Shown here: piece after piece, positions 2,745 to 64,000 of the stretch
Numbering within the stretch: the first letter of the stretch is position 1
Layout of the letters: each line of letters begins with the position of its first letter
Assembly (NCBI GenBank): GCA_023515725.1
Contig: JALDTO010000098.1
Coordinates: 894,164 to 958,163, forward strand
Source of the DNA: Amoeboaphelidium protococcarum X5
Lineage: Eukaryota > Fungi > Aphelidiomycota
DNA: 64,000 nucleotides
Reading direction: 5' to 3'
Translations under genes and position numbers: made by a program
Notes under the pieces: generated by a model
Databases searched by the model: none
Seen by the model: only the letters and a program-made list of their open reading frames with translations
What the model was told of the DNA's origin: nothing

Positions 2745-3653
2745 ATGGTTCAAGAGTACAGATAATAAATTACACTGGCGCACTGTAGAGTCTTGATACT
2801 ATTGTTCTTGTGCATTCTATTTGCATTGTCAATCGTTAGTGTTCCGTAGCAAAAGATTGTCGTTAATGGCGGTGGTAGTGTCAAAGGAATATAGCAGAAC
2901 ATGCGCCTGAAATCAGTATTAGCCAAACCACGTCTTTAGTATGAAATATTCAGCTCATGGGAAGATTGTGCTCAATTTGTCTGCATTTTCAAGCATTTGA
3001 ATGAATCTGAATATACTCACTATCCTCCAATTCAGTCATTATCTAAGAAGCTGCCGTTCTGTAATGATTTATTGTTTCATGGTCTGAAACAGTTGGACCG
3101 TTTACTCAAAAACCATCATATCGATTATTACTTGGTGTTTGGCACGCTACTTGGCTCACAGTATAATGACATTTTTGGTTGGACACCGGACGTTGATCTT
3201 GCTGTTAAGGCGGATGCATTTGAGAAAATGCTACTAGACCCGGCTGTCCATCGAGATTTGCACAAGTCTGGCTTTGTCCTGTATCGGGGCGGTGAACGCC
3301 TAGCACGCGTATGTCTGTCATATGGTCATCCTTTGATATAGAATTCTGTGCTACCTGCTAAGAATAGAACAAAAATTTAATCCGAGTATTACAAGAACTT
3401 TATATACTACGACATTTACAAAGAATTCAAGCTCGCCAATGGACAGCTGCGTATTAATCCCTCCCAGTGCCCATTGTCTCATTCAGATATATATCCACTG
3501 ACTAGAGATGAATGTGCAATAAGGAATCATACCATGCTATGCCCAAGGAACAAGACGGGTATACTTAGACAGCATTACGGTCCAAAGTACAATTAAATGA
3601 TTCAAAACATTTCTAATGATGAGATGGCAACATATGGCTGCGGCATTTAATGA
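2745..3653 (+). CDS. LicD/fukutin-family phosphotransferase, type II membrane protein (302 aa)
   Basis: N-terminal hydrophobic anchor VLILLFLCILFALSIVSV, motif YYLVFGTLLGS...WTPDVDLAV, C-terminal IYPL...CP...LRQHYG. Ends TAA-TGA. Confidence 0.8.
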
Positions 3654-3740
3654 TCCGAATGTGAAGCTGAATTGGAAATGTTAAATAGTGATTAAAACAG
3701 ACAATAAACGTGCTTTGTTAGTATAAATAATATTAATTTA

Positions 3741-4346
3741 TCATAGTTTCTATTACCGCAGTTTGTAATCATTTAACCCTTGATGTACTATCTGAATGTA
3801 TTGCTTGGCCTCAGTTCCATAGACAGCCTCACATTTAGCAGTCAATGACATCAATTCTTTACAAGATTTTACGCGTTTCCTCTACTAACCGCATCTATCC
3901 AGTTAAGCACCACTGAGAAATGATTCTTTTTAATATTAATTTCTCCATCTGGACAATAAATCTTCCCCGCCACCAATATTCACACATTGATAAAGATCGA
4001 GCAATTCTTGTGCACATAACTCTTCTCCAATCTAATCATGTTTAAGTTTATCCTACACCGGATAGAATTGGTCCAAGAATTAATGCCTCTACACATTGGT
4101 CATAGCCTTCCACTCATCTAGCGGCATTATATCTTGCATAGTATTGTAATCTGGTTCAAATGGGGCATCATTTTGAGTAGTAGTAACGGAATCGTCGTCA
4201 TCAATATTATTATTACCAGGTTCCAACGACCGACCAATAGAGGGACCTTCCAAGTAATCATACAAGACTTTAACACCGTTAAATACGCGTCGACCATACT
4301 CTTTCCACTGGCTACTATCATTTCCATCACCGTTCTGAGTCGCCAT
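3741..4346 (-). CDS. Hypothetical protein (201 aa) with twin CX9C motifs, EMI1/DUF3128-like
   Basis: ORF-track segment 4089-4346 continues through TAG/TAA to TGA at 3741. Contains CAQELLDLYQC-VNIGGG and CGQQRKRVKSC. Confidence 0.6.
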
Positions 4347-4939
4347 GGCTTACTGATCTTTTTGAAAGGCTCTTTTGCAACTAGGATGAGAGACGCCGCA
4401 CTTCATAAACGTTCGCCTTCAATTTAATTACAATTCGGCTAAGCATGTTCTTAAATCTGTCTAATATTTATTTTCAATAAAGCAAAAGAGAAATGTTGGA
4501 TACTGCTTCAAGAGACTTGACTTTAAGTGCGGTATCTCCCTATAAGAGAAGCATCGAAACTGATCAGCCTAGTTGATCAATTAGGATGTCATTGTAGATC
4601 CAAAGACTTTATGATCTGCGATTACAGTAGGTAGTTCATTTGTAATCATCAGACAATGCAACATATAATCTGATCTTGTGAAGCTGAATTCTTTATAAAT
4701 GTCTGAAATGTATTATAATACCTCCTTAGCTTAATTGAGTACTGAATAACTGCTCCCATAGTCCAACAATAGCTAACCTAAATTCACAACTGAGCCCCCC
4801 TGAAGCATTGTGGCTTGGACTTCTGGACAATCCTTGTTATCTTTTAAGCAGCACAAAGCCTTATATCAGATAATCTTTGATATTTCATATATTCAGCAAA
4901 TATAGGAGTTGACGAGAAAAATAATTGTAATAATAAAGT

Positions 4940-57673: not shown

Positions 57674-59095
57674 TCACATAAAGTATCTATGATCCGCATC
57701 CACTTCCACTTACGAATCAGTATCCATGTCCATCAATTCTGATATGTCATCCATAGAACTAGTAAGGCGGCTGTCCAATTTAAAGCGTAATCTTAATCTG
57801 CGTTATTGCTCCTAATCAGAGTTTGTTCTACTTAGGGAACTATGACTTGAATCTAACGAATCCCCTCTGATAGCATCGAATCGGTGAGTAGAGCCACTCA
57901 GACCACCAACACTGAATTCACGATGAACCTAGCTCAAATCACCAATTGGAATAATCTGCTGACATTGACTTTGTGAATGTGCTTAAGCAAAGAATGGATG
58001 ATTATACAAATACGCCCACTATAGAGGACGCTTATCAAACACTTTCTAATTCATGATGGCCTCTCGAATGCACTAATTCCTGTAGTCGTTATCAAGAGCA
58101 CCCCTGAGTGTGAAAACGTTATATTCATCACCAACAATGCATGCGCCATACAATTGGCTATCAGAGATACTAAGCACAATTTCAGCCAGACTTTAAAATA
58201 ATGAAAAGTAGATTCGATGCGCCGGATCATCAGCCAACTCCATCCATTGATCATAGCTGATGGAATAGATCATGGCCAACATTGCAAATCTAGCATTGAA
58301 ATCTTTAGGCAATTCCTTCATTGAATGAGCTGAATTGGACGCGACAATCTTTTTATTCATCTAAATCTGACTATCTCCGAAATCAATAATCTTGGCCATA
58401 CGATTATCAGTTAGATCTGCCGGAATCAGAATATCAGTGAAGGTGATTAAGTGAAAGCATTTGGTTCCACTATTAGCCACGAAAGGTGATGGCGCTTCTC
58501 CACCCTGTCCAGAGGGTAGAATTTTAGTCATCAGATTGCGTGGATTCATATCGGCTTACACAAATCTTAGGTGATGATACGCAACGTCAAAGGCAGCAAA
58601 GAGTTGGAGCAGCATTGAGGACATGGCAGGCAACACACGCCAAATATCTAACTGTTCAAAATAATCTTGCATAGAGCCATCAAGGTACTCCATCATCGCA
58701 TACATACCATTCTACACGGGGCCCAGTCTTGTCGGTCTCTAACAGATAAATGTATCGAGCAGCGCCACAAAATTCGGCGTGAGATCACGTAAACGCGTCA
58801 GCTCAAAATTGATCAGGATTTCATGCTAGAAACTGTACCGTTTATAATCATCATCATTATTGTTATTGCCATTACCATATTGTACAGAGTTCACCTTTAA
58901 CGCATATTAATCCCCCACTTTGTAGGTGCGGCCATACGTGCCAGAGCCAATGTACTTGACTCTGTTAGACACCAGAACAGAGCGAAGGGCAGCGCAATCC
59001 TTGAATTTAAGGGCGTTAGTCGCGTATGTGAAAATGCCAGCATTGAATGCAATTACAGCCAGAAACGCGTAAAGCAATGTCAAATAGCTTTTCAT
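57674..59095 (-). CDS. Signal-peptide-bearing atypical Ser/Thr protein kinase, paralog A (473 aa)
   Basis: Signal peptide MKSYLTLLYAFLAVIAFNAGIFTYATNA, then IGSGTYGRTY, ALKV, FQHEIL, MMEYLDGS, FVQADMNPRN, KIIDFG, KDFNARFA. Intronless. Confidence 0.85.
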
Positions 59096-59512
59096 CCCAC
59101 CCGATCAGCTTTCTCTATACTATCTTCTATATCGTATACTTTGGAATAAGCTGGTATGGGAAAAGAAGAAATTGCTTACTAATTAGGTGATTGCGGCTCG
59201 ATGATGTGTGACACGATTTTTCAATCTCAGCCCAATTGCATCACACGGCATGTGAAACCACGCGTGGCCCTTAATCTTGAGTCACAGTGTCGATCCATCA
59301 AAGCATCATAGTTGCAATCTTATGAAAATTCACGCGTACATTAACATCTCACGTTCAGTAATAATAATAATTTAAAGAAGATAAAAGTTATAGTTTATTT
59401 GACCTAATAAGAATTTTTATAAATCGCTCATAATACAGACTACTAAGAAATTACGCCACATAGCATTAAGACCAGAGTGTATAGTCGGAGAGCGAGAGAG
59501 AGCATGATGGAA

Positions 59513-60643
59513 TCATTAATTCATTTCTCCATAGTTGTTGTTATTGTGGCCATAAATATTTGCGTAAGGTATCACTTGAGCATCATTTATGTATTTATCA
59601 TGAGAACGCAGTTCTGAAAAGATTGCCTTATTAAATAGTTTAGTCCAGCTCAAAGATTGATAGAGCGGTTGATCCAGAAGAGTTTCGCGCACACAAGCTT
59701 GTTTCATTTCATTCTATTGAATCGAGGATACAAAAGATATAAGATTATCGGCGGACATCCAGCAAGACTTATAAGCTTTCATGTGATATTGCAAAACGTA
59801 CTTTGCAATATCATCCAATTTTTGATACTATTCAGAAGCGGTTTGTCGCAATGACAGTAACGTGTCAATAGGAAGCACTGATAGCACTGCGAAAACTGCG
59901 AATCTAGCATTGACATCTTGATGATAAATCTCTGAATTCCAGAGTTTGCCAGATTAGATAATTTTGCCATCATGGATAATTTACGCGTGCCCAAAATCAA
60001 TCAGCTTTACCATTTACCAATTAGATGCTGAGAGTGGAATGAGGAAGGAGTCGACATCCGAGACTACGATTGACAGGCTATCAAAATGCAGTCGACGATC
60101 ATACGCGCTTTTTATCATCAAATTGGCGGGATTAGTGTCCAGCATTATAAAACCTGTCAGTTGGTGGGCCACATACAATGTAGATAGAATTTGCAACAGG
60201 AATGATCGGGATGTTTCAAAGACTTGAAACTACGCCGACAATGTAGTCATGTAAGACACCATTGACTTATCCAGTTTCTCCATCTAAAGATAATACTTCG
60301 ATTCAGAAGGAAGAACTATTGGTGTAGCTGGACAATACATCGCATAGTAAAATTATACCACGCCACGAATATATCCGGCATCGAGCAGATTAGACAATTC
60401 ATGAGAAATGAGCACCTCTTTCTCTATCTACGCGCCAGCCAACTCCGAGCTTGGGGTCTTTATAACTGTGCCATCCGATATCTAGTATACTCTTGCGTAG
60501 CTGCCGGACGTCAAATATCTGATGAAGCGTCGACTCTGTAGGTATTCGGCAAAGCCTTTGCACCTTTACAGTTCATTGTTGTTCGCGTTCACCGAATTCA
60601 TCACGAGCAAGCACGACATGATGAGCTGATACCAGAGCAACAT
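59513..60643 (-). CDS. Signal-peptide-bearing atypical Ser/Thr protein kinase, paralog B (376 aa)
   Basis: Signal peptide MLLWYQLIMSCLLVMNSVNA, then LTSGSYARVY, VIKT, IEKEVLI, QMEKLDKS, FIMLDTNPAN, KLIDFG, QDVNARFA. Intronless; ends TAA-TGA. Confidence 0.83.
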
Positions 60644-61528
60644 ATTAATAATGTCGAATTGATATTAAAAGTTGAGAAAAAGCTAAATATATTTTAATGG
60701 GAAAGTTATAATTTTCCGTGGATTCAGGGGCACATGTTACACTACTTTCAGGTGAATGTAACAGCATGACCGTAACTCGAAACACGAATTTTTGGGTCAT
60801 TCTTTTCGATGATATAAGACATACTCACAGTGATTTGATTTGTACCAAACTATATACAAAATTAAATGTTATTTTTGGATATAAACAGTGTGTTGTAAGT
60901 TATTTGATTTCAATTTTACTTCGTAACTTAGCTGTTGTGTGGGTGGCGCAGTACCAATTTACCGACTCTACCATTCTTTTATGATGCCCCTGGTCTTTTT
61001 CTTAGCGCGACTCACGGTTGTGGCAAACGGAAGCAATTCTGAGGTTTTCATAGATGACTCAAATAATTTAGTATGATACTTAATGGGAAAGCGTATCAGT
61101 ATTGAATCTAAGAATATTTGGAAACTAGGAACCGATGTACGCGATGTTTTCAGCATTGGAATGACTGTCTTTATTGAAAAGTCTCGCATCATTTGACATT
61201 GTTGACTAGCTAACACGATATTGATGTTTCATAAATGCCGATGAGCAATTTACAAGTTTAGAATTAATGTATAACAAGTGTTGTTTTGAGCAGAGAGTTC
61301 AGACTATAGCGTGCGATCGCCATCGCCGTGGCTCCGTCCGCTAAACAATACCGAAACGAATGAACAGCAGCGAAAGAATGAACCGCGAGAAAAGAAAGAC
61401 CTTGACCCAAATCGCCAAAACTTTTAAAGAGAGAGCGGCTCGTTGGTACGATTTCGTCATTATTTTGCTCAGTATCACAGCTTTGTTTCTACTGACAATA
61501 TATCACACAGCTACCACTTGAATCTATA

Positions 61529-62534
61529 ATGTTTCGCGGTGCATCTAGTAGAGCTTATTCGCGTGGTGCTGGCGGCTTTAGAAATTTTAGTTCTGCAAAC
61601 TTTGGCAAGTCATTCAGATAGCAATATCAGTCATCATCATCATCCTCATCCCACAGGAAATACTCATCATTTGCTCAGTATGCCAAAGCTGCAGGATTTG
61701 ATTTTAAGCCGTCTGCCAGCGGAAAGTTCACTTACTAAGCCAAGACTACTTTCGCGTCGATAGAACGCGCTGCTGCCAAGAGAGCTGTCGGTATTGGTAA
61801 GATTAAATTCTACTCGTTGATATTGATATGATAACGCGTCGATATTTATATCTTCGCATGGTATGTGTGTAGCATTAGCCTCCAAGTTGCCTCTCTTAAT
61901 GTCGGCCGCAATGAACGGCCCAGGTCTCTTCTTATCCGAGTTGGACACCGGTGATGAAGAACTTGATGATGAATGTATGTCTTTAAGTACTGTAATTTTT
62001 ATAGCGATTCATTCTTTTGTATGTCGTGCCTCTGGCCATTTGAGACGTGCATTGGATAGTGTATTTCTGATAATGGTAAGTTTTGTTAATGCTCTGTGAT
62101 TGTATAATCTGACCGCGCGTTTGTAGTAGCATTTAAAATGCATCCAGCGAGAATTACATTATGTAGTAGGCGGGATACGCTTAACAGTATTAGAAGTACT
62201 ATTGCTATCTAGGGCTTTGAAATGTCATGATTTAAATCTGGCAGCCATTTGAGTCTATCATTAACCAACTCTTAGTGGATGGAATTCTGGCGGCCCTGTT
62301 TGGTGGTCGCATCCCGGAGAAGAGTGTGGAGATAGATTGCTTGTCGAAGTTGGGTGTGTGTGTGGTTGATAAAAGTCTTTATCAGTTGATTTTGTTGTTA
62401 GTCACAGATGATCTTTACAATAATATACGCGTTTTATTTTACTATCTTTTGTATTTGTTTATTCTGTAGATGACCGAGGATTTTCTGCGATCTTCTAATT
62501 TTAGATCACTTCCGCTCCTCTTAGAATTGAGTGA
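61529..62534 (+). CDS. Hypothetical multi-exon protein with a mitochondrial-presequence-like N-terminus; 3' exon structure uncertain
   Basis: MFRGASSRAYSRGAGGFRNFSSANFGKSFR... (R/S-rich, no acidic residues), intron about 61797-61872 ending TGTAG, then ALASKLPLLMSAAMNGPGLFLSELDTGDEELDDE. Further donors and acceptors occur up to about 62469. Confidence 0.5.
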
Positions 62535-62621
62535 TTTTCTATCGCTTTTTTCAGATTTTTACCTTCAAGTCCTATTCAGTCTGTATGATTGATTGATTGA
62601 ATGCTTGGAGAGTAAATATAA

Positions 62622-64000
62622 ATGGAAAATATGGAAAAGGATCAATTAATTATTTCGAATGTAGATGAAGAGGATGGATTCTAAGTGGAAAAGCAACAGA
62701 TTGTATTTCAGCATATATAGCAGCGAAAGTGGAAATTGTGGCTGATCATTGGCTGTCTATCTGCTCTATTCATTACAGTATTCAGTCTCTCTATAGCTCT
62801 GGTGATAAGCAGAGATGGTCAAATATCACCGGCTGATAGGCCTAACCCAGTGATTCTCATATCGCTAGATGGATTCGCCGCCAGGTATCTGCAGCGTTAG
62901 TTGACTCCTAATCTATAGCGGCTTATCGATAATGGTGTACATGCCCCTTTTATGCAGCCAGAATTTCCCAGCAAGACTTTCCCGAATCATTGGTCTATAG
63001 TGACTGGTCTCCTATCTGAGAGTCATGGTATCGTGTCTAATCAATTCTATGACCCGGTGATTGATGATGTCTTCACCTATACCAACGATACTTGTAGCAA
63101 GGATCCTCGATGGTGGCTAGGTGAGCCAATATGGAATACTATCAAGCGATAATAACTCAGTTCAAATGTCTGCTTCTGGCCTGGTAGTGAGGCTCCTGTT
63201 AATGGGATGCATCCAGATCGATATATTCCATACAGTCAGGCGACAGAGATGGATAATAGTGCGCGTGTTGATCAAGTGCTTGAATGGCTTGGTGAGCGAT
63301 ATGCCTGGGATCAGACTTATGGACCAGATTTGATTGCAATGTACATCTCCTCTGTCGATTCCACAGGTCATGCAAATGGACCAGATTCTTCCGCTGTGGA
63401 TGAGGAGATTAAGAGAGTTGATACTGATGCTATCGGTCGATTGATCGATGGACTGAAGGCAAGGAATGCTCTTGATTATGTCAATTTGGTCATTGTCAGT
63501 GATCACGGTATGGCTGCTACTGATCCGAATAAAGTAGTCTACTTAGAAGATATCTAAACGTCTACCGGTCTGAATGTGACAAATTATATCACCGTCTATG
63601 ATGGCTCTCCCGTACTTCACATCCAGCCCCACAACGATTCTGTCGCTGATGTTGTCTACACTGCTCTGAAAGAGTAAAGTGTTAAAGACAAGACTTGGAA
63701 CGTTTATAAACGCGGTGAAATACCGCCCATCTACTAGTACAGCAATAGTAATAGAATATCGCCGATAATTTTGGTTGCTGATTAGCCTTACACCATCTCC
63801 TAGAAGAGAGGTGACTATTTCCTCAAAGGAACTCATGGCTACGATCCGCGGGATTCTGATATGCACTCTATATTCATTGGACATGGCCCGTAATTTGCCA
63901 AGAATTCCACAATTGCAGAATCTTCTGGAATGTCTAATCTAGACGTTTATAAGATTCTGTGCGCACTTTTGAATGTCAATGAAGCTCCCAACAATAGCAC
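62622..64000 (+). CDS. Ectonucleotide pyrophosphatase/phosphodiesterase (NPP, type II membrane); runs off the right window edge
   Basis: TM anchor, VILISLDGF, PEFPSKTFPNHWSIVTGL, WWLGEPIW, VDSTGHANGP, VIVSDHGM, GTHGYDP...MHSIFIGHGP. Confidence 0.93.

Follow-up and report, generated by a model that had tools for sequence, protein, structure and literature searches.

Secreted kinases of parasites are an already known kind of protein. The ROPK/WNG kinases of Toxoplasma, the FIKK kinases of Plasmodium and CRN8 of Phytophthora are all divergent kinases of intracellular parasites that bear an export signal (10.1101/2022.03.02.482640; PMC12137140; PMC3426532). Fam20C, VLK/PKDCC, FAM69/DIPK and POMK/SGK196 form another set of kinase folds, targeted to the endoplasmic reticulum (ER), with non-canonical catalytic loops and conserved cysteines (PMC3696010, PMC7948968). 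Haspin (GSG2/Alk1, PF12330) carries HRD and DYT/DFT motifs and a long activation segment with a DYQF helix, and is active without phosphorylation of its activation loop (PMC3513839). Here we analyse two adjacent genes, A and B, of Amoeboaphelidium protococcarum X5, located in a 64,000-nucleotide stretch of contig JALDTO010000098.1 (assembly GCA_023515725.1, positions 894,164 to 958,163 of the forward strand; the whole stretch is called the window). Their products are not an unplaceable family: the evidence of trees, profiles, language-model features and an AlphaFold model connects them with the wider haspin / giant-virus haspin-like kinase group. The anatomy of their N-termini suggests that both may be secreted.

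A. protococcarum lives as a parasite inside green algae. Infestations of mass algal cultures by it are known (PMC3577820). Database matches are the sole basis on which effectors of this species have been put forward, and the main text of the dual RNA-seq study mentions no kinase of this type (PMC8657485). The incomplete library that was searched yielded no report in which a kinase of the haspin / giant-virus group is secreted, and none of a characterised secreted kinase in aphelids. As far as these searches reach, what is new and undescribed is a signal peptide, judged by anatomy, on this type of kinase, together with the loss of both catalytic-loop histidines.

The two genes are tandem and co-oriented, and are the two longest open reading frames within positions 57674-60643 under translation table 6: gene B at 60643..59513 (minus strand, 376 residues) and gene A at 59095..57674 (minus strand, 473 residues). 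An initial annotation, made from the letters of the window, had described them as adjacent, co-oriented and intronless. The reading frames bear this out, as do the identity of the translations with database proteins P0007 (A) and P0003 (B) and the annotation of the sister copies, which are single-exon (gene range equal to protein length) and named Amoeboaphelidium protococcarum hypothetical proteins. The code in which TAA and TAG specify glutamine is supported because none of the 139 Pkinase matches in the genome has an internal TGA, most have TAA/TAG, and TAR and CAR codons are exchanged between homeologues. A pseudogene reading of A and B is rejected, the apparent stops being glutamine codons; bacterial or viral contamination is rejected by the 2-Mb contig and its eukaryotic synteny. 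The features, in window positions, are as follows.

57674..59095, minus strand: gene A, single exon, 473 residues (P0007); homeologue MIR68_007693; second strain MP228_008582 and MP228_012062
59513..60643, minus strand: gene B, single exon, 376 residues (P0003); homeologue MIR68_007692; second strain MP228_008583 and MP228_012061
59096..59512, no strand: intergenic spacer between B and A, 417 bp
59012..59095, minus strand: signal-peptide-like N-terminus of A by anatomy, residues 1-28, candidate cleavage after Ala19 or Ala28
60584..60643, minus strand: signal-peptide-like N-terminus of B by anatomy, residues 1-20, ending in VNA
57980..59008, minus strand: kinase domain of A, residues 30-372, with Gly-loop 50-55, Lys67, Glu92 and β4 Cys118
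59609..60574, minus strand: kinase domain of B, residues 24-345, with Lys62, Glu76, Cys28, Cys104, Cys294 and Cys317
58535..58564, minus strand: catalytic loop of A, residues 178-187, FVQADMNPRN; Asp182 and Asn187 kept, HxD His replaced by Gln
60122..60151, minus strand: catalytic loop of B, residues 165-174, FIMLDTNPAN; Asp169 and Asn174 kept, HxD His replaced by Met
58385..58534, minus strand: haspin/viral-type insert of A between catalytic loop and DFG, Asn-to-Asp spacing 51, low confidence in the structural model
58376..58384, minus strand: DFG of A, residues 238-240
59990..59998, minus strand: DFG of B, residues 216-218
58283..58303, minus strand: DFNARFA of A, the start of helix αF, located 29 residues after DFG, with Asn where Asp is usual
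59897..59917, minus strand: DVNARFA of B, the start of helix αF by model and alignment
57677..57931, minus strand: Ser/Asp/Arg-rich C-terminal tail of A, residues 389-473, 85 residues

A and B belong to the protein kinase-like superfamily, with the Lys, Glu, Asp, Asn and DFG Asp on a bilobed fold. Their identity as kinases stands above chance because Pfam Pkinase (PF00069) matches B with E 2e-6 (27.8 bits) and A with E 2e-4 (21.3 bits), both below the 31.7-bit cut-off, and because profile scores reach 36-56 bits, while none of 400 shuffles exceeds 6. They are not canonical eukaryotic protein kinases: the Pkinase scores are sub-threshold, HRDxK and APE are missing, and the spacing from the catalytic Asn to DFG is 51 residues in A and 42 in B, as compared with mostly 33-42 in haspins and viral kinases and mostly 13 in canonical kinases. 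The two proteins share 25-27% identity (BLASTP 25%, E 5e-31). All motifs listed in the initial annotation are present, namely K67/K62, E92/E76, the catalytic Asp...Asn, DFG at 238/216, D[FV]NARFA, four aligned cysteines and the absence of APE, and so is the Ser/Asp-rich tail on A. None of the aligned copies has lost the Lys, Glu, catalytic Asp, Asn or DFG. Two further changes are common to both catalytic loops, since the HxD histidine is lost and the His/Lys two residues after the catalytic Asp is replaced by Asn. The Gly-loop of B retains one of three glycines.

The affiliation was examined against about 190 motif-fetched giant-virus kinases, about 20 environmental haspins and 49 canonical kinase domains of this genome; the HxD and DFG columns of these sets are partly fixed by the motif patterns used in the search. 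First, the ESM Atlas features of B, a result independent of our choice of sequences, give ten listed clusters with scores of 0.97-0.98, all 86-100% viral and mostly from Nucleocytoviricota. Several of these clusters carry Pkinase, Haspin or Pox_ser-thr_kin annotation, and some viral kinase clusters carry PF05445 or PF12330. Second, a mixed viral haspin-like profile scores A at 56 and B at 36 bits, as compared with 17 and 19 for a canonical and 18 and 9 for a haspin profile, with the caveat that canonical kinases reach up to 39 bits on the mixed viral profile. An hhalign comparison yields E 1e-16. The viral kinases are themselves related to haspin (E 2e-11 for the human protein; 8 of 35 match PF12330). 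A narrow profile of an abundant 600-residue viral family barely scores A or B.

Third, an AlphaFold model of A, computed with viral rows in the alignment, has a mean per-residue confidence (pLDDT) of 73.6 and a predicted template modelling score (pTM) of 0.77. Its best match among solved structures is haspin (Z 21.4 vs 17.1 for the next family; Foldseek E 6e-8), and its best predicted-structure matches are Pithovirus sibericum W5S4F6, invertebrate iridescent virus 3 098L and a Yasminevirus protein. Matches to CDK2/CDK6 (E ~0.004-0.01) are rejected as a generic kinase signal, and P0017 is rejected as unrelated.

Direct homologues were sought more widely. In Pfam, Haspin_kinase PF12330 does not match A or B at E<=10, no secretory-kinase family matches either protein, and neither NCBIfam nor PHROGs gives a match. 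Word-based protein searches returned A. protococcarum copies or relatives of the added viral rows, and pattern scans of viral, metagenome and prokaryotic contigs returned no direct relatives. A profile search of representatives found no homologue outside the species, although a 64-residue query makes this weak evidence, and three of its five matches were repeat artefacts.

The trees comprise 51 rows in two alignments. Rows excluded were near-duplicates, one haspin and four viral sequences on long branches, and four haspin artefacts produced by read-through. A and B form one long branch (support 100/95-97), which lies outside the sampled canonical kinases (100/99) and outside the crown haspins (100/100). 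The pair does not belong to the haspin family. Its placement relative to the viral groups corresponds to no resolved branch in either alignment, and attraction of the long branch towards the outgroup may play a part. The approximately unbiased (AU) test rejects grouping with the haspin of this genome (p 0.0005 and 0.0016), so an origin as a duplicate of that gene is rejected (AU p 0.0005-0.002). It does not reject grouping with the full set of viral rows (p 0.226), with one viral subgroup (p 0.294) or as sister to all haspins (p 0.225). The true haspin of the genome is present as two homeologues (L005 on G000:C156 and L006 on G000:C135), with frames of 717 and 860 residues from the first Met.

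Within the limits of these trees, the sequences show descent of A and B from one haspin/giant-virus-type kinase. Transfer from a giant virus would be plausible, and giant viruses do infect zoosporic fungi (PMC13533422; aphelids not mentioned). An ancestor from a Nucleocytoviricota virus has a little less than an even chance, and an ancient haspin-related eukaryotic paralogue is put forward somewhat more tentatively still. The GC content, third-position GC content (GC3) and TAA/TAG use of A and B match those of the neighbouring genes, and because of this likeness we regard the pair as long resident and outside any viral insertion. An endogenous giant-virus element is rejected, as the locus has no viral neighbours and no deviant composition.

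Compared with Nucleocytoviricota haspin-like kinases, A and B have the same long insert, DFG with its Gly, non-RD (arginine–aspartate) catalytic loop, lack of APE, Phe before the catalytic loop and N-lobe Cys pair. The segment from DFG to αF is 29 residues long in A and B and 29-30 in one viral subgroup, as against 54-83 in haspins and 39-44 in canonical kinases. A compact subgroup of giant-virus haspin-like kinases of 370-450 residues, mostly invisible to Pfam (L157, L160, L189, L222, L226; P0012-P0014), has this activation segment of 29-30 residues and an N-terminal Cys, as in A and B. The viral proteins have an HxDLHxxN loop, an invariance partly fixed by the search pattern, which A and B do not match, their catalytic His being replaced by Gln/Met and the second His by Asn. 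Furthermore, A and B carry a signal peptide by anatomy, an Asn rather than an Asp in αF and an extra C-lobe Cys pair, share only 16-19% identity with the viral kinases, and have host-like codon use, including TAA/TAG for Gln, and ordinary eukaryotic neighbours.

With haspin, A and B share the best solved fold (a partly circular match), the insert, the N-lobe cysteines, the αF Asn and the lack of APE. In contrast to haspin, they have no PF12330 match, QAD or MLD instead of HRD, DFG instead of DYT/DFT, a non-RD loop, an activation segment of 29 instead of 54-83 residues, no long N-terminal region and a signal peptide by anatomy; moreover, the genome holds a separate true haspin. Haspins are further characterised by a nuclear role and the phosphorylation of histone H3 Thr3; a signal peptide argues against a role of A and B in the parasite's own nucleus. 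The mosaic can be summarised by feature. DFG, the non-RD loop and the 29-residue segment are virus-like, the Asn at the αF Asp position is haspin-like, and the Phe two residues before the HxD His is common to A and B, haspins and viral kinases but not to most canonical kinases. Four features are unique to A and B relative to the haspin and viral sets: the signal-peptide-like N-terminus, His to Gln/Met, His to Asn and the C-lobe Cys pair. The long insert and haspin/giant-virus traits noted in the initial annotation are supported.

Both N-termini have the anatomy of signal peptides, which very probably are cleavable and direct A and B into the ER. The hydrophobic cores reach Kyte–Doolittle (KD) 11-mer values of 2.71 in A, 1.97 in B and 2.38 in the B homeologue and are followed by small residues. 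The candidate cleavage site of A after Ala19 aligns with the VNA of B, the alternative being Ala28. The earlier wording of a 'classical' signal peptide rests on anatomy. Upstream exons that would remove these N-termini are unlikely, because A has an in-frame TGA four codons upstream of its ATG with no AG between, and because in B the upstream AG is not conserved among the four copies and 1-nt indels occur upstream. Neither sequence contains a KDEL/HDEL retention signal or a membrane anchor. The later hydrophobic peaks (A 154-172, B 248-266) correspond to the kinase helices αE and αF by the model of A and the alignment. N-glycosylation sequons number zero in either mature protein vs ~2.6 expected in each (P ~0.055 each, post hoc).

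Contig C207 carries the pair again, with 89% DNA identity, and in the second strain the pair occurs at two loci, both within the same gene context. A and B are therefore syntenic across two subgenomes and two strains, with the tandem pair kept in all four loci seen. The genome searches yield four genes, which are two paralogues with homeologous copies of each; this count is a lower bound because a viral-only profile missed A and B at first look. The initial annotation had proposed paralogue counts, structural comparison and dN/dS (the ratio of nonsynonymous to synonymous substitution rates) as checks: at least two paralogues are found in the genome, haspin is the best solved fold with some circularity, and dN/dS indicates purifying selection in A (0.18) and B (0.165), with 0.15-0.16 in the kinase domain. 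The Ser/Asp/Arg-rich tail of A is less constrained (0.26). One second-strain copy of gene A is 10 residues shorter at the C-terminus (467 residues; L027:11574-12977), so the end of the tail looks dispensable. The neighbours are an ENPP-type phosphodiesterase on one side and Rce1, BRE1 and LCM/TYW4 on the other.

We tentatively favour the view that A and B are secreted effector kinases which act on host proteins in the algal cell. A kinase of haspin or giant-virus type would have gained a cleavable signal peptide and then duplicated to give the old tandem paralogues. Their products would enter the ER, where they would be neither anchored nor retained, and would leave the parasitoid as soluble enzymes into or towards the occupied algal cell; given ER entry, we lean slightly towards such a release. 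There, with ATP available inside the algal cell, they would use Mg-ATP to phosphorylate Ser/Thr of protein substrates, and at least one paralogue is probably active. Phosphorylation of the activation loop would probably be unneeded, because A and B have neither an RD loop nor APE, and because their activation segment has the 29 residues also seen in some viral relatives. The complete history, in which a giant-virus haspin-like kinase was captured, fitted with a signal peptide, duplicated and delivered into algal cells as an active His-less effector kinase, is improbable when all its steps are taken together.

The resemblance to ROPK/WNG, FIKK and CRN8 is a functional analogy, consisting of a divergent kinase with an export signal (by anatomy in A and B) in an intracellular parasite. 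These kinases belong to other lineages, and CRN8 has an RD loop and a CRN N-terminus. Furthermore, delivery into the host has been demonstrated for ROPK, FIKK and CRN8, whereas A and B are known here from their sequences. By analogy, A and B may function like these proteins or like Fam20C/VLK, but they are members of none of these families. The effector reading is lifted by the presence in this genome of a separate family of canonical-type kinases with signal peptides.

Several results weigh against this combined picture of origin and function or weaken points of the initial annotation. With equal profiles of 15 sequences, the viral preference is modest: A scores 23.6 on the viral, 21.2 on the haspin and 13.7 on the canonical profile, and B 21.1, 11.0 and 15.8, respectively. 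A four-sequence alignment without viral rows gives an unusable AlphaFold model (pLDDT 33), so the haspin/viral resemblance of the model is partly circular. D[FV]NARFA, once put forward as a private motif, turns out to be the N-terminus of helix αF, which begins D-x-x-F/L in viral kinases and N-x-x-W in haspins. Similarly, of the four cysteines earlier read as disulfides of a secreted protein, the N-lobe pair is no evidence of secretion because it is common in relatives (N-terminal Cys in 11/16 haspins and 9/28 viral kinases; β4 Cys in 8/16 and 18/28), while the C-lobe pair is family-specific and could form a new disulfide. The loss of both catalytic-loop histidines makes a pseudokinase or an altered chemistry possible; these histidines never vary in the viral and haspin rows, an invariance that the search patterns impose in part. 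The idea of a lineage-specific family like ROPK/FIKK holds insofar as the searches run found A and B in this species alone. The lineage-specific expansion and diversifying selection of ROPK/FIKK-type kinases are absent (dN/dS 0.17-0.18), and the low copy number of two paralogues, a lower bound, the purifying selection and the conserved housekeeping synteny, all atypical of fast-evolving effectors, hold the effector reading down. Lastly, an in-frame TGA occurs after about 42 codons of one second-strain copy of gene B (L441:4424-5557, JALECJ010000258.1). NCBI annotates this copy as a 257-residue product from a later Met (MP228_012061).

It is rather unlikely, though the best of the alternatives, that A and B are kinases of the secretory lumen or the cyst/spore wall which act on the parasite's own secreted proteins or glycans, in a role resembling that of Fam20C, VLK or POMK. 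A housekeeping-like role of this kind is suggested by the purifying selection, the conserved synteny and a copy number that is low and fixed, and the family-specific C-lobe Cys pair could provide a lumenal disulfide. VLK, FAM69 and POMK also have a residue other than His at the HxD His position, as B does. Yet an anchor or retention signal is missing, Pfam matches no secretory-kinase family, and the searches run found no homologue in other aphelids or fungi, where a core secretory function might be conserved. The initial annotation had already set the pair apart from Fam20, and a Fam20-type kinase is rejected because no family profile and no top structural match points to it. In addition, A and B differ from Fam20C, VLK, FAM69 and POMK by their haspin-type insert, and from FAM69 by their 4-6 cysteines as compared with 12-18.

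Less probable still is that one or both proteins are secreted pseudokinases or scaffolds, perhaps an active/inactive pair, with selection acting on a nucleotide-binding fold and not on catalysis. Pairs of active and inactive kinases are found in ROP18/ROP5 and Fam20C/Fam20A, and A and B are retained together in all four loci seen. The HxD His and the His/Lys two residues after the catalytic Asp are lost, and the Gly-loop of B keeps a single Gly. Against this, the five residues of phosphotransfer (Lys, Glu, Asp, Asn and DFG Asp) are identical despite the ~27% identity of A and B. A hydrophobic N-terminus serving as an uncleaved membrane anchor or organellar targeting segment, with the kinases acting inside the parasite cell, would suit the moderate core of B (KD 1.97) and the Phe at -3 of the best-aligned cleavage site of A, but it is very unlikely, since the cores seem too short to span a membrane as an anchor, end in small residues in every copy of both paralogues, and have a comparably hydrophobic counterpart in only 5 of 192 fetched viral kinases.

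As effectors, A and B would be concrete candidates for A. protococcarum. Together with the separate signal-peptide family of canonical kinases, they suggest that the sister group of Fungi has repeatedly drawn kinases into its secretory pathway. If A and B are active, their catalysis would proceed with a catalytic loop devoid of both histidines kept in haspins and viral relatives, and if the viral ancestry and host-directed role hold true, the pair would represent an enzyme of viral descent that a eukaryotic parasitoid has domesticated and turned on its host.

Other kinase genes were seen as well. In the same genome, canonical-type kinases with signal peptides occur in tandem at L432:1809-3098 and 3273-4631 (plus strand; G000:C205) and at L433 (G000:C155). 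They have an HNDLKPxN loop, a short Cys/Trp activation loop, a retained APE and 9-11 cysteines, and are unrelated to A and B. The long kinase genes L426-L430 have H[CS]D[LI]K loops, with Thr/Ser-rich N-terminal regions in L426 and L427, and resemble receptor-like or mucin-stalk kinases.

Next to the pair, the ENPP-type phosphodiesterase (PF01663) lies at about 61300-64000 of the window (plus strand), has a hydrophobic N-terminal segment and stands head-to-head with gene B, an order seen in the window and in two annotated loci. The position of an ecto-nucleotide enzyme beside putative secreted kinases may be a coincidence. A Logan contig of 2.3 kb from another public run, SRR845265 (L440), matches the C207-type copy of the pair at 98% identity; it is rejected as evidence of expression, as it spans the intergenic spacer and so looks like DNA.

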